Position numbers and translations under genes: made by a program
The notes under the pieces: model-generated
What the model saw: the letters and a program-made list of their open reading frames with translations, nothing else
Databases searched by the model: none
What the model was told of the DNA's origin: nothing
Shown here: in pieces, positions 445 through 59,464 of the stretch
How positions within the stretch are numbered: position 1 is the first letter of the stretch
Layout of the letters: every line of letters begins with the position of its first letter
DNA from: Octopus sinensis
Taxonomy: Eukaryota
Assembly: GCF_006345805.1 (NCBI RefSeq)
Contig: NC_043001.1
Coordinates: 104,532,001-104,596,000 of the forward strand
Length of the DNA stretch: 64,000 bases
Direction: 5' to 3'

Positions 445-506
445 TTAGTTTCTTCTTTGTCAAGAAGTGTATGACAGTACAGGTCCTTTGAAAGTTCTCC
501 ACAACC
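445..506 (-). CDS. e24, long type-C exon (62 nt): [20 protein letters not shown](K/N)
   Basis: gaatatttatag|GGTTGTGGA...GAAACTAA|gtaaat. Confidence 0.85.
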
Positions 507-3500
507 CTATAAATATTCAAAATGATAGCATATGTTTAGACTTTATAATAAAATAAATGATTTAACATCAGTAGTTCTATTTTACCATGTAAATGACTCT
601 TCAATCAAACTGGATATTGCCTCACTTCCTGAAGTAATTGGTTGTTTTGCTTCTCTACATCCACAGAATGTATACTAATTTACAGATGCTTAATTTGAAT
701 GAATGAGCAAATGCAGATTTGGTCTAAATGCATGAAAGTGAGGGAATTACCAATAAGGTCACCCAAGACCAATCTTTTAAATATTTTGGTGGAAAACAAG
801 AGAAATCTCAGTCATGACAAATCTAGTTAGAAACACATCATAAAGAACAGGTGACTTAGATGAAACTGCACCTTGTTACATACTGTGATGTCACAAGTAG
901 GCTAATGATATCGTTTACCTTATTTCTTATATGAATTAAGAGTCTTCAGAAAAACCTTCATAGATGACAGAATGTTGAAGGTATTAGAATGGACAAGGGA
1001 TCAAATCTAAGTCCATGCAAAATACCTTTCTAAGAGCTTGCTGCTACTAAATTTCATACACAACATTTGGCTGGACACCCAGGTTAGGGGTTGAGTATTG
1101 AGATTGATCCTGGAATCACATGCTTGCAAAGTAAACTACTTAAATGCATATCAATGCTTGTGCCTGCTTTGCAGGTGTAAGTGGATGGCTGTATTTTAAA
1201 TGGGTGTGGCCATAGATGGGTAGGGAAGATGTTCAATTTGCAACCACATGATTCCTGATTTAATCCCAATACCCAGCACCTTGGACAAGTGTTTTCTACC
1301 ACAGTTATTGTTTGACCAATTCCTTGTGAATAAAATTTGGTAGATGGAAACTGTGTAGAAGACCAGCTGTTGCTTGTACATTGAAGCCTCTGACTACAGC
1401 ACAATGTTATCTAAGGAAAAGACAAAGGCCAATACAGCTTCACAGTAGTGTTACCACAAGCATGGCTGTGAGAAGGGAAAAAGCATGATGAGATACCACA
1501 AGGCATCCAGTCAGGTGTTTTAACAATCCTGGACTGCTACTATTATTATCAATTTCAAAAAGTGAAAGGTAAAATTAACTTCACTGATATTTGAACTCAG
1601 AAGGTAGACAACAAAGACAAATACTGCAAAGCCTTCTACCCGATGCTTGAATCTCTCTGCCAATATACTGCATTGTAAATAAATCGTATCAACTAACCTG
1701 AGAGTCTTCGAAGTGTTTTCTTGCAAGTCTCCTGCAAAAGAAACAAACACATGTTCATCACATCATCACAATCATCATCATTACTTCTACATCAATTCAC
1801 AAAAGGAACCATTGCAGAACTGTTATTTTATGTTTGTACATTTTATTATTTAAATCTAAATCTAGAATTCATTTGAATAGGTTTAATCTCTGATTATCAC
1901 CAGGCATCATATTTGTGGATGTCAGTACAGTATGAAACTGGAATGTATTTAGCTTCCAAAAGATTTCTCTGTCAGAAAAAGCAGCCATGGTGAGTTGATG
2001 TCAGTTTTAGGTTTATCTTAACTGGCTTCTTAACAAGAGCATGACTCTTGCTAATAGGTAAAGCATCTTGGTTTTCCAAAATGGACAAAGGAACAAATAA
2101 TATTACAAAGTATTATAAATGCTTCAAATTTTCATTAAGCTTGAAACTCATGTTCATTCATTCAAATTAAGCTTCATTCAATTATTCTGGCAAAAGACTT
2201 TTGTCTTTGAATAACAAGTAATTCTTCATTATCTCACTTCTATATTGCTCACTGGCCAGTCCTTGGTCAGTTTTGGTAGCATATCAGGCAATTTAAGAAG
2301 TGGTTGCAAACCCTTTGATTTAACCCTTCCCCAATTATAGAGACAGAGACACTGTGGATGTGCCCTAAGATATTTTACACAGCACAATGACACAGTGAAG
2401 AAGTTAAGAAAGTTCAATTCATTTCTTTTGTTCTTGACTACAGTTCATTATTTCAATGTGAACTGGAGAAAGAAATGATTCTGAATTGAAAATTCTCCCC
2501 TTATTCTGTTCCTCCCCTGTCTCTGTTCTGTGGGTGTATGGAATAGGTTTGAGCCTTTTGTTTTTCATTTAAATACATACAAACAAAAATAGTGCATTAA
2601 AAGTGGCATAACAAGGACTTTCTGAAGTTGAAATACTGAACATATATATTTAATTATGTCTCTTACTATTTCCTATATTTACACATCTTTATATTGTTAT
2701 CATATTTATACATCACAGTCTCCTCATAATTAAAGATAAAAATTAAATTTAAGCAGAATGTTATAAAATTACTTACCTGACATCTTCACCGTCAAAATCT
2801 TTGGCATAGTTATCAATTTCTTTTTTGAATTCTTTATATTCCTAAAAAAGTTTACAATAAAGACAATAAATGCAATGATTTAACATTAATAGTTCTATTT
2901 TGGATTGATTTCGACTCTTCAATGAAACAAAACATTACCTGACTCACAGAAACACTTAAACAAAAAAAAACAACTAAATCATCATCATCATCATCATCGT
3001 CATTTAACGTCCGTTCTCCATGCTAGCATGGGTTGGACCCATCTTTTCTCTATATATGCTAAATTCCAGTAAAGAGCTGAAATCATTCACTGATGGGGGA
3101 TATTACCTAACTTGAGAAGTGATGCACTAAAGGGATGTAACATAATACTACAAGGCATTTCATCTTGCACTGTCAACTGATTTTGATATTCCCTTCTTAA
3201 AAGAAGATTCTATGCAGTCACTAAAAGATAGCAACAAAATCTCCCTTAGATCTTGAAAAAAAAAAGAAAAAGACAAAAAGAAAGGCATGACTGCATGGTA
3301 AGAAATTGGTTTCCTAACCACATGACTCTAGGTTCAGTCCTACTGTGTGCAACTTTGGGCAAGTGTCTTCTACTATAGCCTTGGGCCAATCAAAATCTTG
3401 TGAGTTTGTGAGTAGATTTAGTTACAGAGACTGAAAGAAGACTGCTACACACACCCACACACACACACACACACACGAGTGTGTGTGCATCTTTGTTTGT

Positions 3501-5364
3501 CCTGAACCATTGCATGACAACCAGTGTTGGTGTGTTTATGCACCAATAACCTAGCAGTCCACCAAAAGTGATCAACAGAATAAGTACCAATCTTAAAAAC
3601 AATAGGTACAGGGGTTGAGTCATTCCACTAAAAATTATGAAAGGTGGTACCCCAGCATGGCCACAGTCTAGCAACTGAAACAAGATGAAAGATATATTGG
3701 ATAATGCTGTATCAAGATACACAGTGAGTTCATTAGCTTCTATTTCAAAGGAGGAATGGGTACTTCTCCAACCAGCTACAAACACTACTGCTGCCTATCA
3801 GCTAAATTGCTGTATGTTGTGTTATCAGACATGAAAAGATGGAAAGCTATGTTGACCTCCGCACAATTTTGAATACAGAAATTCAAGAAAAGTGTTAAGC
3901 TGTCATTTGATTGCTCAGCTAAATCTTCATCAACTATCATCTTTAAAATGTCTTAAACACGTTTGTTAGAAGGGGCAGGTAAGTTTCCATGATATTTTGG
4001 TAGCCCTGTCTCAGACTTGTAAGGATTTCCATGTATGTTGTTCAACCTCAACATCTGAAGGAAAAAAAATGTATGGAGAGGGAACTGCTGATTTCATCCA
4101 AATGCATGAAGGTGAGAGAATTCATACTAAAAGCACCCAAGAAGCAGATGGTGGTGTTAAAGTGAGTGGTATGTAAGACCTGTAGCCAATTTTCTGATTA
4201 AACAAAGGACTTTGATCAAAACCAAACAGCTGGTCATCTTATGTCCATATGAGGAAAATAACGACCTATTGGAAATCATCATCATCATCATCATCATAGT
4301 TTTAATATACACATTTCATAGCTTACATGGGTCTGGCAAAATTCATTCACATAGTATTTTTACAGTGTAAGGATTTAATGTGTGTCCTTGGTCTTTAGAC
4401 TCTGATGGAAAGACAACTGGAGCTAAACAACAAAAACTGTAATAGTAACAGCAATAGCCACAATAGTCACAATCAATGGTGCTGCAGCTACATCCACAAT
4501 GTTTACATGCATTTTAAAAGAGGAATACTCTCAACAATTCAACTGCAAAAGCAAAGAAAAATCATAAATCTTAAAATGACTGTTAAGGGCTCTGGCTCGA
4601 TGAGATAAAACATATGAGAGATAACAAGTCTGTGGTTAGGATGCTTTTCTGTTTCAACTCACATTAACGGAGGATCTACCAACTTATTTCCAACAGCTAC
4701 ACAAACTCAATATGCTGTCTTTTACTAAAATAAATAAATAGTGAGAACTCACTTTTGTATATCCACAATGTTTTCTTGCTAGAGCCCTGCAAAAGAAATA
4801 AAAGGACACACATCATCATCATGATCTTCATCATTTTTATGTCTTGAGACAAAGATGAACATCATAAGAATATAACTTTTATATAATTTCAGGAGAGGGC
4901 TAAGTCAATTACATTGACCCCACTGCTCAATTTTTATTTATTCTATCGAACGTGAAAGGATGAAAGTCAACTGCAATAGAATTTGAACTCAGGATTGGGG
5001 AGTGAGAGGTAAGCATAGTGCATCATCATTTAACATCATCATTATTTAACATCTGCCTTCCATGCTTGTATGGGTAGGACGGTTCACTAGGAACCATCCA
5101 GACAGAGATTTGCACCAGACTTCTATGACTATTTTGGCAGAATTTTTACAGCTGGACGCCCTTCCTAACACTAACCACTCAGCAGAGTGAACTTAATGCA
5201 TTTCATGTGGCCAAGCACAAGTGAGGTCAGTTTTGGCTTGGTTTTTACAGCTGGATACCCTTCCAAATGCCAATAACAGAATTTGAACTCAAAATGTAAA
5301 GACAGATCGAAATGCTACTAAGCATTATGCCTGTTGTGCTAATGATTCTATCAGCTAAACACCT

Positions 5365-5396
<32 letters not shown>

Positions 5397-8300
5397 TATA
5401 TCATTATATTGTAATCACATTTATACAAAACAGTCTCCTCATTTCAATGAAGCAAAAATCCAATTTAAATAAAATTTAATAAAAATATTTACTTAGCTTC
5501 TTCTTTGTCAACATATTGGTTATTGTCCAGTTCAGTGCAAAGATTTTTGTAACCCTATAAATATTCAAAATGAAAGCACATGTTTAGACTTTATAATAAA
5601 CTGAATGATTTAACATCTGCAGTTCTATTTTACCATGTAACTCACTCTTCAATCAAACTGGATATTGCCTGCCTTCCTGAAGCAATTGGTTGTTTTGCTT
5701 CTCTACATCCACAGCAACATCAAATTTCAGATATTTTAGGAACATTGGAATAATTCCAGAACATATTCTTTCAACCAACTTAGGACTGTAGGAAAATTAA
5801 AGTAATCATTTCTAAACAATGCACAAGATCACACATTTTGTAGGAGTCTAATTATTTGCAACACAGAGCTTGACTAATAAAGGAATGTGGTCTACTAATT
5901 AGGGTTTTAACTTCACAATTATAAAATAATGGCTTTGCTTCCTGGACCAAGAGGTACATTATGCCCCTGAGTAAAACAGTTCAGTATATTTCCCTCTAAT
6001 CTACTTAGCTGACAATATGCAACAGCTGAGTGATGCTGGAGCCCTCTCTCAATCCAGCTATCATGTCCTCACTTTTGGGTGAAAGGTAGGATGGTTGAGG
6101 AGTTGTTTGTATCGAATTGTCACTGCATAGACACATAAAACACTTAGTGGAAGTATGGTTTCATGATACCAGATTATATTATTTTGTGTGAGATAGCTAC
6201 GGAGTTATTTTTGTGGATTATTTTTCTAAATACTTGACTAATATTTTCTGAAATCAGAAAAGATGCAAGACAAAATTGACAAATGTGAGATTCAAAATCA
6301 GGCAATAATCCTCCACTTCATGAAAAGAAGTTCCAAAATACTCCTTACATCTCGAATAAGAGAGAAAAAAGTTGAGAGATTTGGATATACTGGATCTTAC
6401 ATTATCCAGATATAGTATTTGGGTAAGGAAAGAAGACAAAATGGTATCACTTTCAACAACATTGCTCATTCAGAACTGACCTGGAATTAAGCCTTTCAGA
6501 CTGAATGCACCCATATCCAGCCTGAATATTCTAACTGTTTAATATTCACACCAGCCTCATCTAACTTCTCATACCTTCCCTACAATGTCATTTTTAAAAT
6601 AAATAATCACACAATTAAAACTACAAGATAATGAATGATTAATTCAAAACAATGTGAATAAATAAGGAGCACCTTTGACACAAGTATTTGAATGTTAAAG
6701 GGGTAAACAAGAATAACAAAAATAAAATTAAATACGAGTCCAATAGAAGAAACAAAGACTTTCTCTTTCATTAGTTTCAATATCAAAGCTGCAGTTGTTA
6801 CTTCTACCAACACAACTTCAACAACTTTCCTTGTGTTATCAAGCTTCAATAAATGGGATGATACACTGAACTCACTTGCATTTCAATTCAGAAATTTCAA
6901 ACATTAAACTAGTATATGAAAATCTTGTATACCGTCAAGTCTCTTCCTCTTAATGCTGCACCAAATTACCAATATTGAAAACAGGTTTAGAAATTCAAAA
7001 CAAAGTAGAGAATCAAAATATGTTTGGAGAAGAAAATAAATCTAATCTCTATTTCTTAACAGAAAAGGGCCATCACAGAAGGCTGCATATAATCGTTTCA
7101 TTTGCTTAATTATAGCAACTAAATTGTCATCAACTATTATCTTTCAAATGGCATCAGCTTATATTAAGTTCCTCGACTTCAGACAATGATCTACTAGAAA
7201 GACAAAACTTTTATATTTTTTATAGGTTTGTCAGATGAGGCAAGTTACGATTTGGGTCATTTTGGTAGCCCTGCCTCAGACTTGTAAGAATTTCAGTGTA
7301 TGATGTTCAACCTGAATAACGGAAGGTAAAAAATAATCGGTGGAGAGGAACTGCTGATTTGGTCCAAATGCATGAAAGTGAGGGAATTACCAATAAGGTC
7401 ACCCAAGAACCAATCTTTTAAATATTTTGGTGGAAAACAAGAGAAATCTCAATCATGACATCTCTAGTTAGAAACACATCAGAAAGAACAGGTGACTTAG
7501 ATGAAACTGCACCTTGTTACATACTGTGATGTCAAAGGTAGGTTAATGATCTCATTTACCTTATTTATTTCTTAAATGAATTAAGAGTCTTTAGAAAAAC
7601 CTTCATAGATGACAGAATGTTGAAGATTATTCAGTCAAATGCAATGGCTGTTTATCCATAATGCAGATCCAATGTCATTAGTAGTACTGCTGCTGCTGCT
7701 ACTGATGCCAGCAACAGCAGCACTATATTAACCACAAGAATACTGCAATGACAACATACCTTGTTGTTAGTGTTATCTGTAGTTATCTGTAGTTGCTGCT
7801 CAATTTCAGACAGTATTAAGAGATTATCTGCTAAATTAATCCAAACATGACATGAATTGAGGTACATGAAGGGAAAATGCAGAATAAATAAATAAATAAA
7901 AAAAACACCTGCACTGGATTTGATCGTTTGACATAAGAGCATGTAATCCAATAGTTTTGTCCCACAACAATCACATTTCTACAGGTGTATCCACTTTGGT
8001 AGTTGATAATTAAATAACACCAGATTTATTAACAAATCAGTTCTTTTTAGCTCTGTTGTAATTCTTTAGCCCCAGGTTAGTCCAGATCCAGCAGACCTAT
8101 TATCCAAAAGAATGTTTCTTATGACTAAACCCAATAAGGACACTTATGCAGGGCCTCCATCACTGGTAGGAAAAGGGGCGGATGAATCCATCACTTGTTT
8201 GGTATCATCAGACCATATACCTCGAGTGAATGCTTACTACAGAAGGAATTCCACTGAATGCATCATAGGAACAGCTGATGGTATTAGAATGGAAAACAGA

Positions 8301-11300
8301 TCAAATTTAAAACCGAAGAACAAGTAAGGTCCATACAAAAGAGATTTCGAAGAGCTTGCTGCTGCCAAATTTCATACACAGCATTTGGTATGACCCCAGG
8401 TTAAAGTAGAAGACTAGGTGTTGCATGTACAATGAAGCCTCCCAATGCACAGCACCTTGGACAAGTGTTTTCTACCATAGTAATTGTTTGACCAATTCCT
8501 TGTGAATAAAATTTGGTAGATGGAAACTGTATAGAAAACCAGCTGTTGTTTGTACATTGAAGCCTCTGTCTACAGCACAATGTTATCTAAGGAAAAGACA
8601 AAGGCCAATACAGCTTCACAGTAGTGTCACCACAAGCATGGCTGTGAGAAGGGAAAGAGCATGATGAGATACCACAAGGCATCCAGTCAGGTGTTTTAAC
8701 AATCCTGGACTGCTACTATTATTATCAATTTCAAAAAGTAAAAGGTAAAATTAATTTCACTGATATTTGAACTCAGAATGTAGAAAACCAAGACAAATAC
8801 TGCAAAGCCTTCTATCCGATGCTTGAATCTCTCTGCCAATATACTGCACAGTAAATAAATCATATCAACTAACCTCATGCTTTTTAAAGTGTTTCTCTAC
8901 CAGCGTTCCTGCAAAAGAAACAAACATATTTTCATCACATCATTGCAATCATCATTACTTCTACACCAGCTCACAAAAAGAACCATTACAGAACTGTTAT
9001 TTTATATTTGTACATTTTATTATTTTAATCTAAATTTAGAATTCATTTGAATAGGTTTAATCTCTGATTATCCCCAGGCATCATATTTATGGATGTCTGT
9101 AGAGTATGAAACTGGAATGTATTTAGTGTACTAAGATTTCTCTGTCAGAAAAAGCAGCCATGGTGAGTCGATGTCAGTTTTAGGTTTATCATTATTCCTT
9201 AACTTTGTCCCACCTTGCTCCTCCTTGCCTGGCTGACTGACGTAGTCAACTACCTCCTCTATAGTAAGACAACTATATCTGTCTCTCTGTCATACACTAA
9301 ACTCTTGCCAGGCTCCCAGCCATATCCCTCGATTCTGCTCCTTCACTCAACTAAGAGCCCTTTGTCTTGCAAGTCACTTGACAACTCCACTGGTCTTGTT
9401 GTCATGTGAGATCACATGTGCCACTGCCATGTAGGAAGTTCCTATGCACTGCCACATAAAATACGCTGAGTACATTCAGTAAAGTAACTGACACTGGGAA
9501 GTGCTCCCAGCAGCATAGACCATGCCGAAAACAAATGGAGCCTGCTGTGGCCCTCCAGCTTGCCAGTTCCTATCAAACTATCCAATCCATACCATTAAAT
9601 GATGATGGTTGTACATGATGTTGATGATGGTGGTGGTGTTAAAGGTCTTTACTTGTAAGTAAAAAAATGTTTTACTTTTTATAATTGAATCAGGGCAAAA
9701 TGAAGACAGACCTGGTTGAGAGGACAATCATTTTAACTGACAGATCTTGCAGATTTAAACAGGATTATTATATGTAATGGTATATATCTTTACATGACTT
9801 TGTAGTGCAGAAGATTTTAAAGACATAATTTCTTATACATTATTTGTTATTTGTATTAAAATTTCAGATTTGTTTTCAATTTCAGCTTCATAAGAATGAG
9901 ACACTTTCATCAAAAAGCAATCAAGATTGGCAGATGATTTTATCCAAAGTTTGAGGTCATCATCATCATCATTAAACATTTGTATTTCATGCTAGCATAG
10001 GTTGGACTGTTTGACTGGAACTGGCAAGGTGGGGAGCTGCAACAGGCTCCAGTCCTCTGCTTTGGTGAGGTTTTTATGGCTGAATGCACTTCGTAATGCC
10101 ATCCACTTTACTGAGTGCACTGGGTGCTTTTGAAATGGCACCAGCAGAGATACATCTTACATGGCACCAGGAAAGGGGAATTTTAATTTTAATCAGAGTT
10201 TAAAACCTTTATTCTTCAATTCATTTCTATATGAACTGGGGAAAGAAATGATCTTGAACTGAAAATTCCCCCCCTTATTCTGTTCTCCCCTGTCTCTGTT
10301 CTGTAGGTGTATGGAATAGGTTTGAGCCTTTTGTTTTGCAGTTAAATACATACAAACAAAAATAGTGTATTAAAAGTTGCGCAACCGGGACTTACTGAAG
10401 TTGAAATACTGAACATAGATATTTCATGTTGTCTCATATCAACAATGTCATGGCTTCTCTTATTATTTCTTACATTTATAGTTCTTACATCGTTATCATA
10501 TTTATACATCACAGTCTCCTTATAATTCAAACTCAAAATGAAACTTAAGCAGAATATTATACAATCACTTACTTTGCCGCTTCTTGTCCAAATTGTTTCC
10601 AATATTCATTCACATCCTTTTCAAACTTTTTATATTCCTAGAAAAGTTTATAACAAAAGCATTTGTTGTAACTTAATAATAAAAGTAATGATTTGACATA
10701 AATATTTCTATCAAGATGAATAAAGAGTAAGCAACGTTTTGAACCATGAAGAATTTGTACTGGATTTTTTGCAGTTTTGAATTTTTTAAAACCATTTTTT
10801 AGCAATTATCTCATTAATACAGACATAGATTTGCCAAATGGATCAATAAATTAATATTGATATTTTTTTACTGTTGTTACAATCATCTGAAAGAGAAATG
10901 TCAATATGTGATATTTGAGCAATTTTGTTATTCAACTTCAAAAAAGGAGTTAAAGCAGCAGAAACTGCTTGCAATATCAATGAAACATTTGGTGAGGAAA
11001 TGACCAGTGAGTGGTCAGCTCGAAAGTGGTTTAAATAATTTCGCAGCAGAGACCTGAACCTTGAAGATCGCAAGCATCGTGGATGCCCATCTGTCATTGA
11101 TGACGGTCATTGAGAAAGATACCGATAAATCTACTCAAGAAACGGCAAAAGAACTTCAAGTTAGCCAGAAAACTGCCTGCAACCATTTGCATGCAATTGG
11201 AAAATAAAAAATTTTGACAAAGGGGTACGACATGATTTGAATGAAAATGCACAGACCAATCCATTTCTTGACCATATTGCAACTTGCAATGAAAAGTGGA

Positions 11301-32300: not shown

Positions 32301-32368
32301 GCTGACCAAAGTCTTGAAAATGGATTTGGTTACAGAGACTGAAAGAAGCCTGCCACAAACACACACAC

Positions 32369-32399
<31 letters not shown>

Positions 32400-50300: not shown

Positions 50301-52172
50301 GGTCACTGTATAATCAGTACTCGTAATAAAGTATGATTTTACATTGGAAGCACATCGTTATCTAAAAGAATTTCTATCCATTACTCAACATTTAGGGATA
50401 GAAATAAACGTAATAGTACCGGTCTCAGCAAACTGATTTGGGATCTAAAAGACCACAATGAACAATTTCATTTAGAATGGTTGATTCTCTCAATCTTGAT
50501 ACCTTGTGACAAAGGCAAGGAATTCTGTCTTCTCTGCAATTCTGAGCTATTTTTCATTATTTTTTCTAAAAATCCCCTAGTAAACACGGATATAAAGCGA
50601 GCATACAGATGTAAACATTGGCAAAAACACACTTTTAGTGCATATAAGTAGTCTCTATCATTATATATAATTTAAACTTTAATTTCCTTTATATTTAACA
50701 TTCACTATTAATATCCCTACCCTTTCTGTAAGCTACTTATGATGTTATATCATATAACGTTTTTTTAAACAATATTAATAGTGTTCAGTTAATCACTGTA
50801 CAAATCCATCCTTTTTTGCTAAAATGTCTTATTGACAAGTTTCGTTTTTTTCTCACTTTCCTGAAGAGAAGATTGCATTGTTTATACCATTTATTCTTTT
50901 GAATAGTATAAGTGGAATTTTCAAAACATATGTCGAAAATAAAAATATTTCCTTTACACCTGCGTTAAACTCCATTTATTTATTCATATGTATATATATA
51001 TAGATATATATACATATATCTATATATATATAATAATGCATGCATGCATACATACATACATACGTCATTCTAAAAATAAACAATCAAGTCATTGAAACAT
51101 TAAAGTTATGAGATAAAGCATAATTAATTCAAAACAATGTGAATAAATAAGCATTACATTTGACAGGGTAATCTGAATGTTGAAGGGTTAAACAAGAAGT
51201 TATAAGATTACTTACAAAACTTCAGCTTTTGGAATGTATGAACGACCGAACAGTTCATTAAGAAAATTTTCATACTCCTATAAATATTCAAAATGAAAGC
51301 ATGTATATAGACTTTATAAGAAAATTCATGATTTAACATCTGCGGTTCTATTTTACCATGTAAATGACTCTTCAATCAAACTGGATATTGCCTCACTTCC
51401 TGAAGCAATTGGTTGTTTTGCTTCTCTACATCTACAGTAGCATCAAATTTCAGATATTTCAGGAACATTGGAATAATTCTAGAACAAATTCTTTCAACCA
51501 ACTTTGTACTGTAGGAAAATTAAAGTAATCATTTCTAAACACTGCACAAGATCACACATTTTGTAGGAGCCTAGTTATTTGTCCACAAAACTCAACTAAT
51601 AAAGGAATGTGGGTTTAAAACTCACCATTATAAAGTAATGGGTTTGGTTCCTGGACCAACAGATAAATTATGCCCCTGAATAAAACAGTTCAGTATTATT
51701 TTCTTCCAGTCTATTTAGCTGACAATAATCAACAGCTGAGTGGTGCTGGAGCCCTCTCTCAATCCAACTATCATGTCCTCACTGTTGGGTGAAAGGTAGG
51801 ATGGTTGAGAAATTATTTGTATTGAATTGTCACTGCATAGACCCGTAAAACACTTAGTGTAGTGAAAGCATAGTTTCATGTTACCAGGTCATATTGTGAT
51901 AGCTATAGAGTTATTTTTGTGGATTATTTTTCTAAATACTTGACTAATAATATTTTCTCAAGCCTGGAAAGGTGAAAAAGAAAATTGACAAATATGACAT
52001 TAGCAGTCAAGAGTACAATTGGTTGTAAGAAAATACAATGTTGCTTATAAGGCAGTGATGTTCATTTCAAACCATCAGATGATGTGAAGACAAGGCTACA
52101 CACAAACACACACACACAAGTACACACACACACACACACACACGCACACACACACACACATGCACACACACA

Positions 52173-52220
<48 letters not shown>

Positions 52221-53121
52221 TGCAATGAGATTCTTTCAGTTTCCATCTACCTGATCCACTCACAAGACTTTGATTGGCTAGGGGCTATAGTAGAAGACAC
52301 TTGACCAAGGTGCAGCACAGAGAGACTGAACTTAAAACCACATGGATGGGAAGCAAGCTTCTGAACCTCACATCCATATCTTTGCCATATGTACTAAAAA
52401 TGCACTCAAATTTTCTGCTACCAAATTTCAAACATAAAATTTGATTTGATCCCAGGTTAATGTAGAAATAATTACCTTAGGGATTGAGTATCGAGATAGA
52501 ACCTGGAATCACGTGATTGCTAAGTTAACTTCTTAAATGCATATAAATGCTTGTGCTTGCTTTGTGGGTGTAAATGTGGATGGCTTTATTATAAATGGGT
52601 GGGGTGGGTAGAATGTTCAATTTGAAATCACATGATTCCTCATTCAATCCCATAGCACAGCTCCTTGGACAAGTCTTTTCTACCACAGTTATCGTTTGAC
52701 CAAGATCAGAATCAGTAAAGTCCATGCAAAAGAGCTTTCAAAGAGCTTGCTGCTACCAAATTTCATACTAAAATTTCGTTTGACCCCAGGTTTAGGTAGA
52801 AATATTTACTTTAGGGGTTGTGCATTGGGATAGAACCTGGAATCACATGATTGCAAAGTAAACATATTAAATGTATGTCCTCTCTGTGGGTGTGAAAGTG
52901 GATGGCTGTATTTTAAATGGATATGGCCATGGTTGTGTGGATAAGATGTTCAATTTGAAACCACATGATTCCTGATTCAATTCCAATGCACAGCACCTTG
53001 GACAAGTGTTTTCTACCACAGTAATGATTTGACCAAGTCCTTCTGAGTAGAATCAAGTAGATGCCTGCAAGCTCATCAAACACACACACATGCATACATA
53101 TACACACACACACACATACAT

Positions 53122-53157
<36 letters not shown>

Positions 53158-56100
53158 GATGAACTTCTTTCAGTTTCCATCAAACCAAATCCTTTCATAA
53201 GGCATTGACTGGCCTGAAGCTATAGTAAAAGACACTTGTTCAAAGTGCCATGCAATGGGACTGAACCAAGAACCATGTGGTTGGGAAACAAGCTTCTTAC
53301 CACACAACCACACCTGAACCTACTGGAAATGGTTTTCATGAAAGGCCAGCTGGTGCATCTGCATAGAAGTGTCCACCTGGCCATACCACCAGTGTTGTCT
53401 ATGATAAAGGTATGGGCTGATACAACTTAGGAGTTCTGCTACAAGAGACAAGTAATAAGAACTAATGCTAAGCTTCTAATGTGATGCTTTGACAATCTTT
53501 GTAATCCATTCTCCTGGGATGGTACTACTATTTTCAAACAAAAAAGAATGAAAATTAAAGTCATTTTTAAATGTTTAGAACTAAAACAAATACTGCAAGG
53601 CATTCTCTCAGATGCTCAAACTAATTGGTCAATATAATGTCATAGAAATATATAAATAGATAAATAAATGAATAAATAATTAGATAAATAAATAAAGAGT
53701 ATCAACTAACCGGTAGATCTTTAAAACGCTCCACTAATATCCTGCAAAAGAAAAGAAACATACATCTTCATTGCCCCATCATCAATATCATGAAAAAGAA
53801 TTATTATAGTTTTATATACGTATTAAAAAAGTTTCCATGTGTCTTAAACAAGCCATGTTGATGGCACTTGCAAACCTGCAGACATTATCGAGAACTAGTA
53901 ATGCTCCTTGGTAAAAATGCTATGTCAAAGATTACTGGTACTTTTCAAATATCACTGGGCTAAAAGTTCTCAAGAACAGAGCACTTAGTTTGTTGCCATT
54001 GGTATCCAGAGATTCTTTGAAGAATGTCATCAATTTACCCTGCTACTAGTTCGTTAGTTCTCTATAAATTACCAATGTAAAAATTCCACCAGTTGCCTTA
54101 TTCAACAGGTGGGTGGCTGTGAGCATTTGACAACATTCCTGATGCCAGAACTGCAGCATTGTCCAAGAGATGAGCTGTGAAAAGGTTTGCTTGACAAAAG
54201 GCATCAAAGCTTGCACAATGCAAGTGAATCTCTGTAAATGTTTTGGTCTCAGCACACATCAACAGCCACTGGATGTTGGGAACTTGCATGGAGGATGTCA
54301 GCAGCAGATAAATTACCTGACACAGAAAACATTCCTTCATGATAAAGCAAATAAGGGTATGCAAGAACTGCACAGTAAAATATTTTGTATTAGCAGTATA
54401 GCCCGGCACTGCTTGGGATTAAGTTAGGATTATTAAGCTAATCAAGTGCTTTGTTTCAAACCAAACTGAGTAACACTGACGTCAAATTTGAGTGTAATCT
54501 GTTAAAATTGGTAAATGTTTGGCCTGAAAATAGAGTGCAGACAATTTGATTGGGAAATCCATAAGGAATCGTTTTATCGATTTTTCCATACATCGATTGT
54601 TTTTTTTTTTTTGGTGGTGGATTGGAGTAACTTAGGAAAACTCATCAACAGCCTTAACAAAAAAATAAGGGGCCTGGCCCTTCTAGCTTAACTCTATGAA
54701 CAACTTGGCCAAGCACTAATATCAGCTGAGTGAGCATTGTTGTTGGAAAAGTCAGCATTGTCCAATAAAGAAGAGGAAGAGTCCATGAGTCATGCTGCCA
54801 TAATTTGAGAATATGCCTGGCCAATGCTTCCGTATCACCTGTTTATAACCATATTGGCTGTAGTGATGACCTGTTCTTCTTTCTACTTCACTATAGACAA
54901 CATTGCATGTTCTGCCCTGTGGAGCATACACAAAAGAGTGTTTCTACTCCCTACACAAGAGCAGGCCACATAAAGTTGCCCATGTGAAAAGCACAGCTCT
55001 CCCAAATTGATGACCACCACCAATAGTGTTTAGCCTTGGGATTTGTTGATGGACATGGCAATCTGCAGATGTTAAACGGTATGTCTGACCCCATGGGACA
55101 AAGGTGCATCCTTGAAATGAAAACATTTCTCCTCCTCCCATACCCTGTAACAATGGTGGCCTCAATAAAGTGGGGTGTCAGGGACTTGACTAGCAAGCAG
55201 GTCCCATTGCACTGTTTAGGCGGATAAAGCATGTACGCTTTATTTCATTTTAGTTTTATTGAATGATTGTGTAAAATTTTCTAAATAGGATATATTGTAA
55301 GTCTACACACACATACACACATGCACACACAAACACACACTTGCTGTTGTTGTGATGCATGTACTCTTTATCCCATTTGAGTTGTTGTTTTGAGTGGCAG
55401 GAGATAAGTTTCAGCGAACTTGAATAGCATGTTCTGAACTCGTTTCTAATTTTGAAATGCCACATATCAAAAAATGCTTTGAATCACATAGGAAGAAAAA
55501 TGGCTACAGCATGAAGTCATCGATTTGCTTCGATCGCCAAGAAAGCAAAAGTACATACAGAGAATTTCATAAACAGAAATAAGTAAATTGTGGCTGAAAA
55601 TAGCAGTCAAATAAAGAATTTAAATATTAAAACAAACAGAAATTAAGGAACGAAATATGCTAGTTGCTAATTACATCATTTTGATGTAATTAGATTTTGA
55701 AATGTTCCAATAGAAAATACCCATATTTTTAATTGACCACATGTAGGTCATGTGGTATCCAGAATGTGATATGAACTAGAGTACCACGCAACTCTCAGGT
55801 AGGATGTGGGTATCTAACACTACCTATCTGATCCTTGCCTCACATATAATACAATGTTAAAATATTATGCTGCTCATGTCAAAATTAATTAAGATATTGT
55901 ATTGGGACCCTAGTGGAGGCACATAGCCTAGTGGTTAGAGCAGCAGACTTGTGGTTGAGGGATCACAGGTTCAAATCTCAGACCAGGTAATGTATGTGTT
56001 TATGACAAAACACCTAAGCTCCATGTAGCTCTGGCAGAAGGTAATGGCAAACTTCTGCTGACTCATTTGCCACAACTTCCTCTCACTCTTTGCTCCTGCA

Positions 56101-59100
56101 TCTAAAAGCTCACCAGCGACGGATCGATATCCCATCCTAGTGGGGAATCTATACACCAATGAAACCAGGAAACTGACCCTTATAAGCCAGGCATGGCTCG
56201 AAAAGGAGCAAACAACAACAATTGAGACCCTATGATGTTGGCTCAGGAGCCAACATGTTAATCAAAAAAATGAGCGTGTAACAAACCCAGCACTTTATCT
56301 AGTAAATGAGCATGGCTGAGACTCTTCACAGTTGAGGATTTTATTGAAGATATTTATTCTTTGGACAAAAAGTGACCCCTATGCAGTCAGTGAGTGTGAT
56401 TTGGACAATCAAACTGGTGAAAGTAATGAGGAAAAAGTGATTCAGTTGAACAAATATTGTTGTTGAAAGATAAGGAGATTATTGTTACTCTCCTAAATTT
56501 TTCATAATTCTGTCCATTAGTTTGCCTGCAATCATTACACTTGAACTGTTTATGCAATTATCTATATTTTGCTTAGGAACCCAAGTGGAGAGTAAAGTTA
56601 GACATAGGGGCACAAGTCTGAGAGGGTTAAACAAGATATTATAGAATTACTTACTCGGTTTCAGCTTTTTCAAAACTCTTTGGAGAGTCCTCTAGCATCT
56701 TTTGAAGACTTCTATATTTCTAGAAAAGTTTACAATAAAAGTATTTGTTGTAACTTTATAATAAAAATAATGATTAGACATTAATAGTTCTATCTTTGTA
56801 TTGCTTTGGACTGTTCAATGAAAGTAAACATTATCTGACTTGCAGAAACAATTCAGTTCTTTTACTTTTTGATGTCCATAGTAACATCAAGTGTGACAAG
56901 TATGATTCAGAAGGAATATAAAAATAATTCCAGAACATATTGTTTCAAACAATTCTACAGTTTACTAAAGCTGAAATAATAATTTCTAACAGGTATATTA
57001 TATTGGCAAATTTTGTAGGTGTGACATAGTCTACATATTTGTTTCCAGTATGTGACTAGTACTTATTTTATCATCCTTGGTGGGATAAAAGGTAAAACTG
57101 ACTTCTGTAGGATTTGAAGGGCTAGTATTTATCAGGTCATCCCATAAGTTCTGTCCGAATGTTGAATAAAGAAAACAAGTGATCAAATGTTATATTTAAT
57201 TGAAATTTAATCATCAATGTACTTTTCCTGATTATCTATGACTTCCATCTATTTACAAGCTTTTTAATCCCATCAATGTAAAACTCATTTGGTTTCAAAG
57301 TAAAGAACTCTGAAATGTCAGTTTCAACCTCCTCCTGGCTTGTGAAAGTTATGTCCCCCAAATAATTCTGTAAACTATGAAACAAGTGGTAGTCTGAAGG
57401 AGCAAAGTCGGGAGAATAAGGTGGATGAGGAATTTTTTCCCAACCAAGCTCTTCGATCTTCTGTGATGTGATTTTTGCAGTGTGGGGTTGCACATTGTCC
57501 TCATGAAACATCACTCCTTTTCGATTCACTAAAGCGGGTCTTTTTTTACTCAAAGCTTGGTTCAAATGCTCTAATTGCTGACGGTAGACTTGAGCATTGA
57601 TTGTTGCATTAGGTGGTAACAATTCAAAGTGAATTACTCCTTTGCAATCCCACCAGATAGAGAGAAGAACCTTTATCCCATAAAGTTCCCTTCTCGGTTG
57701 TGGTTGAGCTTTTTCCCTATTACCAAGCCACTGTTTACGACATTTAACATTTCGATAGAAGATCCATTTTTCATCACCAGTTACAAGTCTATCTAAAAAG
57801 GGTGAAATAAGTTCGAGAGAATGGAGAGAAGAGCAGATGTCAACTCAGGATTTGTGGTTGCTTTCGGACAATTCATGAGGCACCCATTTTCCAAGTTTAA
57901 GAGCCTTTCCAAGTTGTTGAAGATGACAATGAACAGTTGTATGGTTTGAACTAAGCTTTATTGCCAATTCTACAACTGATAATCCAGGATTTTTTTCAAG
58001 TAGTGCCTCAAGGAGCTTATCATGAAACTCAACTGGACGTCCTGTTCAATCTTCATCTTCCAGGCTGAAATCTCCACTTCTGAATTTTGTGAGCCATCTT
58101 TTGTAAGTTCTTTCATTCAAGCATTCTTTCCCATAAACTGAGTGTTATGTTTCGAGTCGCTTCGGCTGCAGAGTTTCCTTTTTTGTACTCATAAAGCATT
58201 ATGTGCCTCAAATGCTATTTGCATACTTCCATGTTAGAAAAGGTTTTAATCAAAGAAATTTTAAGTCTATTATTCTGTAATTAGTTTAAATGTACACAAA
58301 TGCAAAAAAATAATTTTTAATTCCATCAAACATTCTAAAATACTATTAAATTTCATTCAGTTTTAAAAACGCTAAAATCGGACAGAACTTAAGGGTTGAC
58401 CCGATAGCTTCTGGCTTCCTGAGAAAGAACAAATGAGCCATAAATACTTCTATGGTTAAGATGCTTGTTTATTTCAGATAACATTACCAGAGTATCATTC
58501 ATTCTTTTATTCATCTATTTCTTCATGCTATTATGGCTTGGATGGAAGGTAACACTGGCAGAATTTTTATAGCCAGATGGTCTTCAAATCACCAAACTTT
58601 ACCTGTTTTATAAAGTGAGTGATTTATCATTCTAGATGAATTTAAAGTGCACAGCTAGCAGATGATTTTTCATCATCATCATCGTTTAATATCTGTTTTT
58701 CCAGGCTAGCATGGGTTGGACAGTTTAACTGAGATCTAGAAAGTCAGCAGCTGCACCAAGCACCAATCTGATTTAGCAATGTTTCTATAGCTGGATGCCC
58801 TTCCTAACTCCAACCACTCCAAGAGTATAAGGGGTGCTTTTTTACATGCCACCAGCACAGGAGCCAGTCAGGTGGCCCTGACAGGAAATATCACAAAGCA
58901 TATCAGTAGCAGCCCAGCTATAAACAATAATATCACTATATATAGCCATAGCTCAGCATAGTTTCAAAGTATTTACACACACACACACCTTTATAAATAC
59001 AGGGTGGGCCAAGTCATGCACAAAATAAATTCAATATGCTCTGGAATTGTCAGACATACTTCAATTTTTCTAAATTAAGATAAAATAAACAAAATGATGA

Positions 59101-59464
59101 TTAAAACTTACATACATGCACATGATGAACAAAATTAATATTAATACTAATAATCTAATATAGATAAAATGTCAAATGTTTTGGTGTGTGACTTTTGGCC
59201 TACCCTGTATATGCACATATATGAGAGGTTCTTTCAATTTCCATTTATTTAATTGTCGGAAAAAGCACTGATTCTGTCATGGCCATCTTGGAAAACACTT
59301 GCTCAAGATACTACACAGTGGGACTGAAACTGAAATCACATGGTTGAGAAACAAATTTCCTAACTGCACATTCTCGGCTGGGCTTGTGTATTCTTACAAA
59401 TAAAAAAATAAATAAACAGTATGAACTAACCTCGATATCTCCAAAGTACTCTCTTGCTAATTTT
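445..59464 (-). CDS. Internal part of a multi-micro-exon gene (24 exons, e1-e24 in transcription order) encoding a tandem ~32-33 aa / ~65 aa helical-repeat protein; unrecognised, PAH-like by inference
   Basis: 24 segments bounded by minus-strand AG/GT sites with pyrimidine-rich acceptors. Phases alternate strictly 0->2 and 2->0. The spliced frame is open through e1-e18 (873 nt) and through e20-e24. Peptide: [291 protein letters not shown] [e19, +1] [85 protein letters not shown]. Confidence 0.88.
1698..1731 (-). CDS. e23, short exon (34 nt): [11 protein letters not shown]
   Basis: cttttgcag|GAGACTTGC...TCTCAG|gttagt. Confidence 0.87.
2777..2841 (-). CDS. e22, long type-A exon (65 nt): [21 protein letters not shown](R)
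   Basis: aaacttttttag|GAATATAAA...GATGTCAG|gtaagt. Confidence 0.87.
3290..3690 (+). repeat. tRNA-headed SINE with internal (CA)n/(GT)n
   Basis: ggtaagaa...ggttcagtcc...gggcaagtgtcttctactatagcc; homologous copy at 31880-32590; related reverse copies at 52080-52360, 53050-53310 and 59240-59370. Confidence 0.65.
4753..4786 (-). CDS. e21, short exon (34 nt): [11 protein letters not shown]
   Basis: cttttgcag|GGCTCTAGC...ACAAAA|gtgagt. Confidence 0.87.
5493..5554 (-). CDS. e20, long type-C exon (62 nt): [20 protein letters not shown](K)
   Basis: gaatatttatag|GGTTACAAA...GAAGCTAA|gtaaat. Confidence 0.87.
8874..8908 (-). CDS. e19, short exon with one extra base (35 nt); ancestral frame ~[11 protein letters not shown]; the incoming frame hits TAA
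   Basis: cttttgcag|GAACGCTGGTAGAGAAACACTTTAAAAAGCATGAG|gttagt; one base longer than its paralogues e11, e15 and e23. Confidence 0.7.
10573..10637 (-). CDS. e18, long type-A exon (65 nt): [21 protein letters not shown](K)
   Basis: aaacttttctag|GAATATAAA...GCGGCAAA|gtaagt. Confidence 0.85.
10711..11930 (+). mobile_element. Mariner (Tc1/mariner) DNA transposon, near full length, decayed
   Basis: TA on both sides; imperfect TIRs (tcaag...agtaagcaacgttttgaa vs tcaag...agtaagaagcgttttgaa); interrupted transposase with [14 protein letters not shown] and [22 protein letters not shown] motifs. Confidence 0.92.
13674..13707 (-). CDS. e17, short exon (34 nt): [11 protein letters not shown]
   Basis: cttttgcag|GGATGTGGC...ACAAAA|gtgagt. 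Confidence 0.88.
15393..20016 (+). mobile_element. Ty3/Gypsy LTR retrotransposon, full length, heavily decayed
   Basis: LTRs at about 15393-15727 and 19506-20016; 5-bp TSD ctttt on both sides; purine tract before the 3' LTR; gag-like ORF 15774-16211; RT ([19 protein letters not shown]), RNase H ([13 protein letters not shown]) and integrase ([25 protein letters not shown]) remnants with many stops and frameshifts. Confidence 0.92.
19771..19976 (+). repeat. Short interspersed (SINE-like) repeat nested in the 3' LTR of the Gypsy element
   Basis: Interrupts the alignment of the 3' LTR to the 5' LTR. The motif gagttcaaattctgcc..ggttgactttgcctttcatc..aagtaccagttg recurs in reverse orientation at about 1-130, 13890-14010, 22440-22630, 33170-33380, 35690-35890, 43490-43640 and 49070-49280. 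Confidence 0.7.
20390..21540 (+). mobile_element. RTE-clade LINE, 3' RT fragment, decayed
   Basis: [22 protein letters not shown] (YADD equivalent); ORF 20711-21115 with FHYLGD and [13 protein letters not shown]. Confidence 0.85.
21560..22262 (+). mobile_element. RTE LINE fragment (linker to start of RT), copy 1
   Basis: Plus-strand [48 protein letters not shown]; near-identical copy at 34735-35520. Confidence 0.8.
22734..22795 (-). CDS. e16, long type-C exon (62 nt): [20 protein letters not shown](M)
   Basis: gaatatttgcag|GATTATGAC...AGAACTAT|gtaaat. Confidence 0.85.
24005..25250 (+). mobile_element. Helitron fragment (PIF1-type helicase), internally deleted
   Basis: ORF 24288-25070: [13 protein letters not shown] (motif I), IAVASSG, LIVWDE, DFRQTLP; out of frame [23 protein letters not shown]; 5' TC start after A (a|tctataatat). 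Confidence 0.88.
27460..27493 (-). CDS. e15, short exon (34 nt): [11 protein letters not shown]
   Basis: cttttgcag|GAAACTTGT...CGTGAG|gttagt. Confidence 0.88.
27722..27975 (+). repeat. Abundant short repeat matching the RTE 3' tail with a (GAT)n end (SINE or truncated LINE). Further copies at about 147-325, 5030-5270, 9410-9620, 9955-10170, 12460-12660, 30190-30420, 30830-31030, 39770-40100, 41660-41830, 42990-43260, 58670-58880 and 61620-61923
   Basis: Shared motif ggcgttaggaagggcatccagctgtagaaac...cccatgctagcatggaaaa.ggacgttaaacgatgatgat in either orientation. Confidence 0.8.
28549..29580 (-). pseudogene. PRPSAP: Processed pseudogene of phosphoribosyl pyrophosphate synthase-associated protein (PRPSAP1/2-like)
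   Basis: ORF 28949-29650 has [17 protein letters not shown] and [22 protein letters not shown]; it continues after a frameshift and stop as [20 protein letters not shown], then [28 protein letters not shown]-stop; no introns. Confidence 0.92.
31439..31503 (-). CDS. e14, long type-A exon (65 nt): [21 protein letters not shown](R)
   Basis: aaactcttctag|GAATATGAA...GATGCCAG|gtatgt. Confidence 0.88.
31973..32281 (+). repeat. tRNA-headed SINE nested in another SINE
   Basis: Head ggcacatagcctagtggttagagcag (A-box) and B-box-like gggtttgaatctc; (AAC)n tail; flanked by the direct repeat tcttctactata; second copy at 55913-56220. Confidence 0.8.
32883..32916 (-). CDS. e13, short exon (34 nt): [11 protein letters not shown]
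   Basis: cttttgtag|TAAACTAGC...TACACG|gttcgt (atypical donor context). Confidence 0.78.
34735..35520 (+). mobile_element. RTE LINE fragment, copy 2 (co-duplicated with the gene module)
   Basis: Antisense ORF 35119-35514 nearly matches 21986-22258; identical junction with host sequence (gaaggaaacaaatgtttggactaggaattcc). Confidence 0.8.
36016..36077 (-). CDS. e12, long type-C exon (62 nt): [20 protein letters not shown](I)
   Basis: gaatatttatag|GATTTTCAA...AAAGCTAT|gtaaat. Confidence 0.88.
36535..37160 (-). mobile_element. RTE LINE fragment (5' part of RT)
   Basis: ORF 36529-36741: [48 protein letters not shown]. Confidence 0.85.
37722..37755 (-). CDS. e11, short exon (34 nt): [11 protein letters not shown]
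   Basis: tttctcttgcag|GAAAGTTGC...CGTAAG|gttagt. Confidence 0.88.
39079..39730 (+). mobile_element. piggyBac-like transposase fragment, decayed
   Basis: Acidic N-terminus (SDFEGF..SSDEED), then [23 protein letters not shown] and [13 protein letters not shown], as in piggyBac/PGBD transposases; stops and frameshifts. Confidence 0.72.
40467..40531 (-). CDS. e10, long type-A exon (65 nt): [21 protein letters not shown](K)
   Basis: aaactcttctag|GATTATAAA...GACATCAA|gtatgt. Confidence 0.88.
40709..41237. repeat. Head-to-head inverted pair of tRNA-derived SINEs (~250-bp arms)
   Basis: Right arm ggcgtagtggctaagagcgcgggctactaaccccaagattccaagttcgattcc... is the reverse complement of the left arm; the whole unit is flanked by the direct repeat agaataaaga (40699-40708 and 41238-41247). 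Confidence 0.85.
42848..42881 (-). CDS. e9, short exon (34 nt): [11 protein letters not shown]
   Basis: cttttgtag|GAAACTAGC...CACAAG|gttagt. Confidence 0.88.
44052..44113 (-). CDS. e8, long type-C exon (62 nt): [20 protein letters not shown](K)
   Basis: gaatatttatag|GACTATGAA...AAAACTAA|gtaaat. Confidence 0.88.
45575..45602 (-). CDS. e7, short exon (28 nt): ELAENCFSK
   Basis: cttttgtag|GGAACTAGC...TCAAAG|gttagt; length 3n+1. Confidence 0.82.
47175..47239 (-). CDS. e6, long type-A exon (65 nt): [21 protein letters not shown](L)
   Basis: aaacttttctag|GGTATGTTT...AAAGCTTT|gtaagt. Confidence 0.85.
47520..47842 (-). repeat. tRNA-headed SINE
   Basis: Minus strand gtgcatggcttagttgttagggtattcagctc...gagtttgattccc...ccttgagcaagacactt. 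Confidence 0.65.
48795..48831 (-). CDS. e5, short exon (37 nt): [12 protein letters not shown]
   Basis: cttttgcag|GAAAACAGC...CCCTCG|gttagt; length 3n+1. Confidence 0.85.
51216..51277 (-). CDS. e4, long type-C exon (62 nt): [20 protein letters not shown](L)
   Basis: gaatatttatag|GAGTATGAA...GAAGTTTT|gtaagt. Confidence 0.88.
52099..52220. repeat. (CA)n microsatellite. Other SSRs: (AT)n 327-360 and 5368-5401, (ACT/ACC)n 27000-27066, (GT)n 32370-32399, (CA)n 53080-53155
   Basis: Directly visible tandem dinucleotide and trinucleotide runs. Confidence 0.95.
53711..53741 (-). CDS. e3, short exon (31 nt): [10 protein letters not shown]
   Basis: cttttgcag|GATATTAGTG...CTACCG|gttagt; length 3n+1. 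Confidence 0.85.
54390..55240 (-). mobile_element. Helitron 3' fragment (helicase C-terminus plus 3' terminus)
   Basis: ORF 54951-55232 [32 protein letters not shown], then MSINKSQG and [14 protein letters not shown]; ends ...gcagtgccgggctatactgCTAA|T (CTRR end before T); absent from the paralogous intron at about 46220. Confidence 0.85.
55913..56220 (+). repeat. tRNA-headed SINE (same family as 31973-32281)
   Basis: Same head and (AAC)n tail; flanking direct repeat attg(g/a)gacccta. Confidence 0.8.
56655..56719 (-). CDS. e2, long type-A exon (65 nt): [21 protein letters not shown](E)
   Basis: aaacttttctag|AAATATAGA...GAAACCGA|gtaagt; open frame. Confidence 0.85.
57132..58404 (-). mobile_element. 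Mariner DNA transposon, full length with frameshifts, D,D34D
   Basis: TA on both sides; 27-bp TIRs with 3 mismatches (tcaggtcatcccataagttctgtccga); [24 protein letters not shown] and [13 protein letters not shown], with 34 residues between the last two catalytic Asp. Confidence 0.95.
59431..59464 (-). CDS. e1, short exon (34 nt, phase 2->0): [11 protein letters not shown]
   Basis: atttattttgcag|AAAATTAGCAAG...GATATCGAG|gttagt. Confidence 0.85.

Follow-up and report, generated by a model that had tools for sequence, protein, structure and literature searches.

LOC115212235 of Octopus sinensis: an uncharacterised octopod gene in which tandem micro-exon modules encode a predicted helical repeat

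Among the described proteins that are built from many copies of a short module, nebulin consists of helical modules of ~35 amino acids (aa) arranged in 7-module super-repeats, and the PEVK region of titin has likewise arisen through duplication of exon modules. UBA-like domains are found in a different set of proteins, including p47/NSFL1C, FAF1 and DCN1. Both sets, together with silk genes of Nephila and Argiope and the micro-exon genes (MEGs) of schistosomes, provide points of comparison for the gene considered here, LOC115212235 of Octopus sinensis. Part of it occupies a 64,000-nucleotide (nt) stretch of the genome (assembly GCF_006345805.1, contig NC_043001.1, forward-strand positions 104,532,001 to 104,596,000), hereafter called the window. 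With a probability of about 0.9, the chain of very small exons found in the window is a 59-kb internal stretch of this gene, comprising 24 of its ~68 repeat-encoding micro-exons and encoding residues 384-771. Within the Nephila Flag and Argiope MaSp2 genes, the repeated introns are reported to be near-identical while the exons evolve more rapidly (Hayashi and Lewis 2000, cited in PMC3563967). The exons of the schistosome MEGs are individually symmetrical, and their products are small, secreted and largely disordered (PMC10526429, PMC4350168).

The octopod gene resembles each of these systems in part. It shares with nebulin and titin PEVK the short helical modules, the super-repeat and the tandem duplication of exon blocks; unlike in nebulin, the octopod module is split over two exons and the super-repeat comprises two modules, Pfam returned no nebulin match, and no result obtained for the octopod protein points to actin binding or to a role as a ruler. 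With Flag and MaSp2 it has in common tandem exon-intron modules with introns more alike than exons, a pattern consistent with concerted evolution, but the silk exons are long and slippage-prone with low-complexity sequence, whereas those of the octopod are 28-65 nt in length, complex and individually conserved between species. As in the schistosome MEGs, the bulk of the coding sequence is carried by tiny exons that kilobase introns separate. The octopod exons (65, 62, 34, 31, 37 and 28 nt) differ from those of the MEGs in that none is divisible by 3 and only pairs of them keep the frame; the octopod protein is, moreover, large, predicted to be helical and without an evident signal peptide, and there is no homology between the two systems. 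Finally, UBA-like modules are present in the first ~370 residues of the full-length octopod protein, but its repeats lack profile similarity to them, and neither a SEP nor a UBX domain, as p47 has (UBA-SEP-UBX), was detected in its C-terminal region.

The exon chain and its gene

All coordinates are window positions, and exons are listed in transcription order on the minus strand. A preliminary description of the window had proposed 24 minus-strand micro-exons between 445 and 59464, together with a repeat motif. The literal motifs EAKKLA and A.KLA have no occurrence in the window; looser motifs matched its minus strand and first gave exons beside canonical splice sites. When these exons and their flanks were then used as blastn queries, 12 long-exon and 11 short-exon sites in strict alternation were returned, and the twelfth short exon (28 nt, 45602-45575) was located by a search bounded by splice sites. 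The pattern that emerged is close to the motif first proposed, apart from the literal EAKKLA.

All 24 exons in the span 445-59464 (-) were recovered (Table 1), each with an AG acceptor and a GT donor (48/48 canonical splice dinucleotides). They alternate, as had been claimed, without exception: long exons of 65 or 62 nt lead from phase 0 to phase 2, and short exons of 28-37 nt from phase 2 back to phase 0. The combined length of a long and a short exon is a multiple of 3 (93-99 nt) except in the pair that includes the 35-nt exon 8908-8874. Among the long exons, type A (65 nt, acceptor ...ttctag) alternates with type C (62 nt, acceptor ...tttatag), and one A and one C module make up a four-exon super-repeat of ~65 aa, again in agreement with the preliminary description. 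When joined, the exons total 1,165 nt, or ~388 codons, with one frame open as far as exon 8908-8874 and the next frame open after it. The single lesion that had been noted corresponds to the sole break in this frame, one extra base in the 35-nt exon. The probability of ~388 stop-free codons arising by chance, estimated from the base composition of the window, is ~1e-12; GC content is 35.7%, and the observed/expected ratio of CpG is 0.20, indicating heavy CpG depletion; by these values the window resembles eukaryotic DNA.

The spliced peptide is identical, as an exact string, to residues 384-674 and 675-771 of XP_036358878.1, a 1,935-aa "uncharacterized protein LOC115212235" of O. sinensis (UniRef100_A0A7E6EU62); one junction residue, at the lesion exon, is not derivable from the genomic frame. 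Because of this exact match the chain is regarded as part of LOC115212235 and, hence, of a real spliced gene, as had been supposed. No exon for residues before 384 was found in 59465-64000, and none for residues after 771 in 1-444. Given that the window lacks exons for residues 1-383 and for residues 772-1935, and that the gene range in GCA_006345805.1 is ~310 kb, the gene leaves the window at both ends, which the preliminary description had also proposed; its supposition of a cephalopod source was likewise right.

When 5.8 billion proteins were searched by word index for the spliced peptide, one match was obtained, XP_014782120.1, a partial protein of 673 aa from Octopus bimaculoides (uncharacterized LOC106877687). 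Its residues 384-673 correspond one-to-one to exons of the window, and the units follow the same order in the Octopus species. With XP_014782120.1 as the query, HMMER was run exhaustively over 1.84 billion representative proteins and yielded six matches, all from Octopus or Argonauta: XP_036358878.1 was the best, and the others were four adjacent partial "hypothetical proteins" of Argonauta hians (GAB1598819/21/22/23) and one 75-aa fragment. A further search added the ortholog of O. vulgaris, a 'hypothetical predicted protein' of 2,076 aa. No relative outside the octopods (O. vulgaris, O. bimaculoides and Argonauta hians) was found in these protein searches, the 1.84-billion-protein scan included. 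When a profile of 15 super-repeats was run against the 5.8-billion-protein set, no match was returned, not even the source protein, and this result is therefore uninformative rather than a sign of absence. The suggestion that the protein is lineage-specific is thus upheld by the restriction of all matches to Octopus and Argonauta, and by a repeat that is unknown to Pfam and to sequence searches of the PDB.

The gene had also been called hidden. This description does not hold, as the gene is already modelled in RefSeq, UniProt and two other genome projects, in every case under an uncharacterised or hypothetical name. The database records contain no name, function or repeat definition, and the preliminary description had not recognised it as any named gene; literature searches on the locus and accession numbers gave no match. 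As gene discovery, then, little is added for a gene that is catalogued but unstudied and whose model is already in RefSeq/UniProt. Its product, annotated but unnamed, is a helical tandem-repeat protein that is confined to one lineage and specified by exon modules multiplied through duplication.

Table 1. Exons of LOC115212235 recovered in the window, in order of transcription (S, short exon; A and C, the two types of long exon).
Type	Length (nt)	Position	Strand	Remark
S	34	59431..59464	-	phase 2 to 0; first in-window exon of the gene, protein residue ~384
A	65	56655..56719	-	phase 0 to 2
S	31	53711..53741	-	
C	62	51216..51277	-	
S	37	48795..48831	-	
A	65	47175..47239	-	
S	28	45575..45602	-	shortest; encodes ELAENCFSK
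C	62	44052..44113	-	
S	34	42848..42881	-	
A	65	40467..40531	-	
S	34	37722..37755	-	
C	62	36016..36077	-	
S	34	32883..32916	-	donor GTTCGT
A	65	31439..31503	-	
S	34	27460..27493	-	
C	62	22734..22795	-	followed by the longest intron (9.0 kb, with transposon-derived open reading frames)
S	34	13674..13707	-	donor GTGAGT
A	65	10573..10637	-	last exon present in the O. bimaculoides model XP_014782120.1
S	35	8874..8908	-	35 nt, not 34 (GAACGCTGG...); lesion, +1 frame shift
C	62	5493..5554	-	
S	34	4753..4786	-	donor GTGAGT
A	65	2777..2841	-	
S	34	1698..1731	-	flanks near-identical to those of exon 8908-8874
C	62	445..506	-	last in-window exon, protein residue ~771; gene goes on past coordinate 1

The repeat and the encoded protein

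Each repeat of 32-33 aa is encoded by two exons. The long exon specifies the Y..F..EL stretch, the adjoining Pro-containing stretch and the initial residues of the one that follows, and the short exon (~34 nt) specifies the remainder of the repeat (KLAxKxF...). Over a 65-aa super-repeat, the consensus is xxYxxFxKxxxxxPxxFxxxxAxKLAExxFKxxEGYxxLxxELxxxxxIDKExxxxLAxxYFG. A hidden Markov model iterated from the units in the window gave 35 matches in the O. sinensis protein, amounting to ~33 full units between residues 395 and 1446, and the array of ~1,070 aa accounts for over half of the protein. The repeats are rich in Lys (14%) and Glu (12%), with a grand average of hydropathicity of -1.0.

The only domains that Pfam detects are UBA-like (UBA_4 and UBA_8), at residues 1-370 and thus outside the window. 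In the N-termini of the full-length proteins, UBA_4 (PF14555) scored 33.8-43.2 bits (cut-off 21.8) and UBA_8 (PF22566) 29.3-38.4 bits (cut-off 26); four UBA-like modules can be distinguished by eye, of which two or three are scored by Pfam. The N-terminus (MGFNKALVVKRF...) is, as judged by eye, without a hydrophobic leader. C-terminal to the repeats are ~214 residues of no recognised fold and then a tail of 275 aa composed of 46% Ala, 18% Glu and 12% Lys. For the C-terminal 210 aa, no Pfam family was found at E <= 10 and no relevant match in the PDB, and neither SEP nor UBX was detected. A possible SEP-like motif in this region (LILYKNGVLFDGG...), which would have hinted at p47 ancestry, was supported by neither Pfam nor the PDB and was dropped.

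No model of TPR, HEAT, ARM, Sel1, ankyrin, nebulin or spectrin in Pfam matched the repeats even at E <= 10, and the best Pfam match of the repeat region was to an unrelated family at 16.1 bits, against a cut-off of 29.3. Sequence comparison of the repeats with the PDB likewise gave no match, the best E value of the 15-super-repeat profile (0.018) being judged spurious. The possibility that the repeats are derived UBA-like helices was considered and rejected: alignment of 47 units with 10 N-terminal segments by hhalign gave a probability of 0.4% and E = 0.14. An AlphaFold2 model of the O. bimaculoides protein, based on a 3-sequence alignment, has alternating helices of 10-12 residues in the repeats, with a predicted local distance difference test (pLDDT) score of 55-75 there and 47 overall; for an Argonauta fragment modelled from a single sequence, pLDDT was 38. 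As both models are of low confidence, only their secondary structure is used here. With Foldseek, no match to the PDB was obtained at E <= 0.001 and none for the repeats, the only plausible ones being to small UBA or UBA-like domains.

Between O. sinensis and O. vulgaris, the repeats are 97.2-97.9% identical versus 99.5% for the termini, a 4-5x faster divergence. The O. vulgaris ortholog has two near-identical super-repeats, at residues 534-590 and 855-908, for which O. sinensis has only one (exons 40531-36016); this doubling is either repeat-number variation between the sister species or an assembly artefact.

The protein is highly charged, lacks an obvious signal peptide and has a predicted helical structure. 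The best guess at its role, proposed with low confidence, is that of a cytosolic helical scaffold or adaptor. In such a role, the four N-terminal UBA-like modules would bind ubiquitin, ubiquitin-like or other partners, and the ~33 helix-loop-helix repeats would form an all-helical rod or solenoid that serves as a spacer or as a multivalent binding surface.

Growth of the array and the lesion in exon 8908-8874

Direct-orientation alignments to other modules cover 57% of the window and as much as 100% of some introns, at a median identity of 82%. The alignable 57% takes in most of the intron sequence, and whole genomic modules have therefore been duplicated, as the preliminary description had proposed. 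Between paralogous modules of Octopus, the flanks are 77-95% identical and the exons 50-60%; taken more broadly, identity is 80-94% for the introns and only 50-70% for the exons. The ~750-bp flanks of exons 8908-8874 and 1731-1698 provide the extreme case, being 92-100% identical around exons that differ at 13-14 of 34 positions. In a test of +/-250 nt, 26 Octopus or Argonauta pairs had a flank identity of at least 80%, and a significant excess of exon divergence was found in many pairs (Fisher p down to ~5e-8), and was absent in a few. In the pairs with the most similar flanks, the proportions of synonymous and non-synonymous differences in the exons (pS and pN) were 0.45 and 0.39, respectively, versus a proportion of differences (p) of 0.06-0.17 in the flanks.

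Amino acid identity is 75% between the orthologous units of O. sinensis and those of O. bimaculoides but only ~30% between paralogous units, which indicates that the exons are old and individually maintained. Flank similarity, on the other hand, differs even within a single pair of modules, with 94% identity around the short exons versus 67% around the type-A exons. By these comparisons, the similarity of the introns is younger than the exons and patchy. The array was built by tandem duplication of whole exon-intron modules, and longer stretches of intron in neighbouring modules were then probably homogenised in Octopus by gene conversion; conversions that overwrote an exon would be removed by selection, and each repeat would thereby stay distinct. 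The short-exon peptides 8903-8874 and 4782-4756 (LARKHCGYT) recur identically at residues 1121-1130 and 773-781 of XP_036358878.1. These peptide twins lie outside the window and the closest flanks inside it, so that exon and intron relationships are discordant.

An alternative to homogenisation of the introns is that the modules were duplicated recently and the exons then diversified under positive selection, as for variable binding surfaces. Flanks with up to 94% identity over ~750 bp around a divergent exon, a change in identity exactly at the splice sites, and repeats that evolve 4-5x faster than the termini between sister species are all compatible with such a history. It is nonetheless unlikely, because selection on amino acids does not predict that synonymous sites should diverge like non-synonymous ones. 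The units are also present one-to-one in O. bimaculoides and the A and C types in Argonauta, so the exons are old, and the patchiness of flank similarity within one module pair looks like local conversion.

The second alternative concerns the one-base lesion. At exon 8908-8874, the genomic sequence is one base longer than is implied by the RefSeq protein of O. sinensis, which reads ...QEAAKTLVEKHF... across it, including ...AAKTLVEKHF...; the O. vulgaris ortholog has ...QEAAKKLVEKHF... at the same place, including ...AAKKLVEKHF..., with no frameshift. The five exons past the lesion retain their AG/GT sites, correct lengths and open frame. The extra base is probably harmless, since O. vulgaris reads through it and the next five exons are intact; an indel of the assembly, or else a change that is private or polymorphic, is its likeliest source, rather than loss of the gene. 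Thus, the lesion noted at the outset is present, but it is probably not a disabling mutation, as both the O. vulgaris ortholog and the RefSeq protein continue across it. The O. bimaculoides model breaks off with ...GQAEAK, precisely where the counterpart of exon 10637-10573 ends and where reading on past the donor (10572-10565) gives AAg-taa, an immediate stop; this model may be truncated, or a real short isoform. The same AAg-taa stop is common to every phase-2 long exon with a GTAA donor, and retention of the intron after any such exon would consequently truncate the protein cleanly. It could be argued from the broken frame of the 35-nt exon, the end of XP_014782120.1 just before it with its immediate stop on read-through, and a ratio of non-synonymous to synonymous substitution rates (dN/dS) near 1 among paralogs that the protein ends after exon 10637-10573 and that the array, at least from exon 8908-8874 on, is a decaying remnant. 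This is highly improbable in view of the intact post-lesion exons and the unbroken frame in O. vulgaris, and the O. sinensis and O. vulgaris models go on for ~21 further repeats, a C-terminal region that is 99.5% identical, and the tail.

Several observations weigh against the account favoured here, that of an old array, still coding, with homogenised introns. The 23 exon junctions rest on the gene models of four genome projects and on sequence logic. The low pLDDT values fit a solenoid, a rod and independent hairpins alike. With a dN/dS of ~0.5-2 among paralogous exons, constraint on individual residues is weak, and between O. sinensis and O. vulgaris the repeats have diverged at 4-5x the pace of the termini. 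Conversion tracts that end exactly at both borders of an exon are awkward for pure gene conversion. Position 2 of exon 8908-8874 follows GG, not AG, and the RefSeq model therefore needs a dropped base or a non-canonical acceptor.

The introns contain other recognizable sequences. An intronless open reading frame (ORF) of 233 aa at 28949-29650 (-), between exons 31503-31439 and 27493-27460, matches phosphoribosyl pyrophosphate (PRPP) synthetase-associated protein: its best match in the PDB is PRPSAP2 (E = 7e-68, residues 43-242 of 379), and Pfam finds Pribosyltran_N and Pribosyl_synth. It shares the strand of the host gene and, being truncated with stops after it, probably represents a retrocopy or processed pseudogene. 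At 24288-25070 (+), in the 4.7-kb intron, a 260-aa ORF encodes a PIF1-like helicase domain (E = 4e-32) and is probably a fragment of a Helitron-type transposon. A fragment of a mariner-type transposase (Transposase_1 / DDE_3) lies at 57236-57622 (-), and an ORF with DUF7083 at 15774-16211 (+), inside the 9-kb intron. GC skew turns positive at 16-24 kb, suggesting that this interval contains a large insertion. There are two (AC)n microsatellites, at 52098-52217 (60 units) and 53080-53156 (38 units), and Rfam detected no RNA family in the window.

Splice-site classes shared with Argonauta

The comparison with Argonauta was made with one DNA fragment, L001, of 78 kb and 24 exons. Its long exons, of 65, 62, 68 or 77 nt, all lead from phase 0 to 2, and its short exons, of 34 nt (10 of 12), 55 or 109 nt, all from phase 2 to 0; the splice dinucleotides are again canonical at 48/48 sites. 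The two-exon module of a long (0 to 2) and a short (2 to 0) exon therefore describes 24/24 exons in Octopus and 24/24 in Argonauta. The exons themselves are only 0.44-0.49 alike between the two genera, and in the 65- and 34-nt exons conservation is highest at the second position of codons, which fits coding sequence under which a hydrophobic pattern is retained. That the exons reflect chance or transposon-derived periodicity in non-coding repeats, and the database proteins over-predictions copied between pipelines, is scarcely credible: although 57% of the window is internally repetitive and all available protein records are computational predictions, there stand against it 388 stop-free codons in DNA of 36% GC, the 48/48 and 48/48 canonical splice dinucleotides, identical exon lengths and phases in two genera, the conserved second codon positions, a hydrophobic pattern (Y, F, L, P, A, L, F) conserved across genera, and Argonauta models from a separate assembly and submitter (GAB accessions, not RefSeq).

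Long and short exons also differ in their splice sites. The donors of long exons begin GTA in 24/24 cases over both genera. Those of short exons have a pyrimidine at +3 (GTYAGT, that is, GTTAGT or GTCAGT) in 12/12 cases in Argonauta and 10/12 in Octopus (e.g., 59430-59425 and 1697-1692), and the remaining two short exons of Octopus, which have GTGAGT, are also those with AAA at their end in place of G. GTYAGT is an uncommon and weak type of donor. Between the genera, intron ends of long exons have match probabilities of 0.49-0.68 (-40..-11) and 0.54 (+7..+20), and those of short exons 0.57 (+7..+20), compared with 0.29-0.44 for cross-class controls and 0.27 for background. Flanks from Argonauta are closer to the same-class consensus of Octopus than to the opposite-class one (Wilcoxon p = 0.0005 and 0.0015). 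Class-specific sequence has thus been kept in the first ~20-40 nt of the introns between the genera, and the exon sizes, the phases and the two splice-site classes predate the split of Octopus and Argonauta. We infer that the conserved intron ends, among them the weak GTYAGT donors that follow short exons, are candidate cis-signals by which the spliceosome would define exons of this size.

For comparison with neural microexons that depend on SRRM3/4 (eMIC), which have a UGC motif just upstream of the 3' splice site, UGCAG was sought there and found at 9/12 short exons of Octopus and 3/12 of Argonauta. GAT/ATG-rich runs (atgatgattgtgatgatgtgatgaa...) occur ~20-60 nt upstream of many short exons in both genera, before the polypyrimidine tract (e.g., 1790-1745 and 8960-8915; Argonauta L001 28950-28994), and could be a splicing element or a microsatellite carried with the module. 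The 18 nt upstream of each type-C exon (e.g., 44131-44114) read cattttgaatatttatag, whose in-frame translation HFEYL* is similar to the ...KHFE... with which short exons end, and tblastn alignments extended several times into this intron end; the likeness could be coincidental or left over from an earlier exon boundary.

Taken further, these features could belong to a dedicated micro-exon splicing system, in which the intron-end classes and weak GTYAGT donors would couple long to short exons, whole repeats would be skipped in a regulated manner, and homogenisation of the introns with escape of the exons would keep the ~33 repeat identities. Such a system is distinctly unlikely and is put forward as speculation.

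For the family, the octopod-restricted and undescribed helical repeat of ~33 aa can be defined as such, and the models of the gene in O. bimaculoides and Argonauta, being truncated or fragmentary, serve as a caution for annotation. An array in which the exons, synonymous sites included, resemble one another less than the introns do is useful for the study of gene conversion versus selection within a single gene. With ~68 exons of 28-65 nt and two splice-site classes, the gene offers concrete candidate cis-elements in a clade about which little is known. If the splicing system proposed above were real, the frame-neutral pair of exons (93-99 nt) would let one gene yield scaffold proteins with different sets of repeats.

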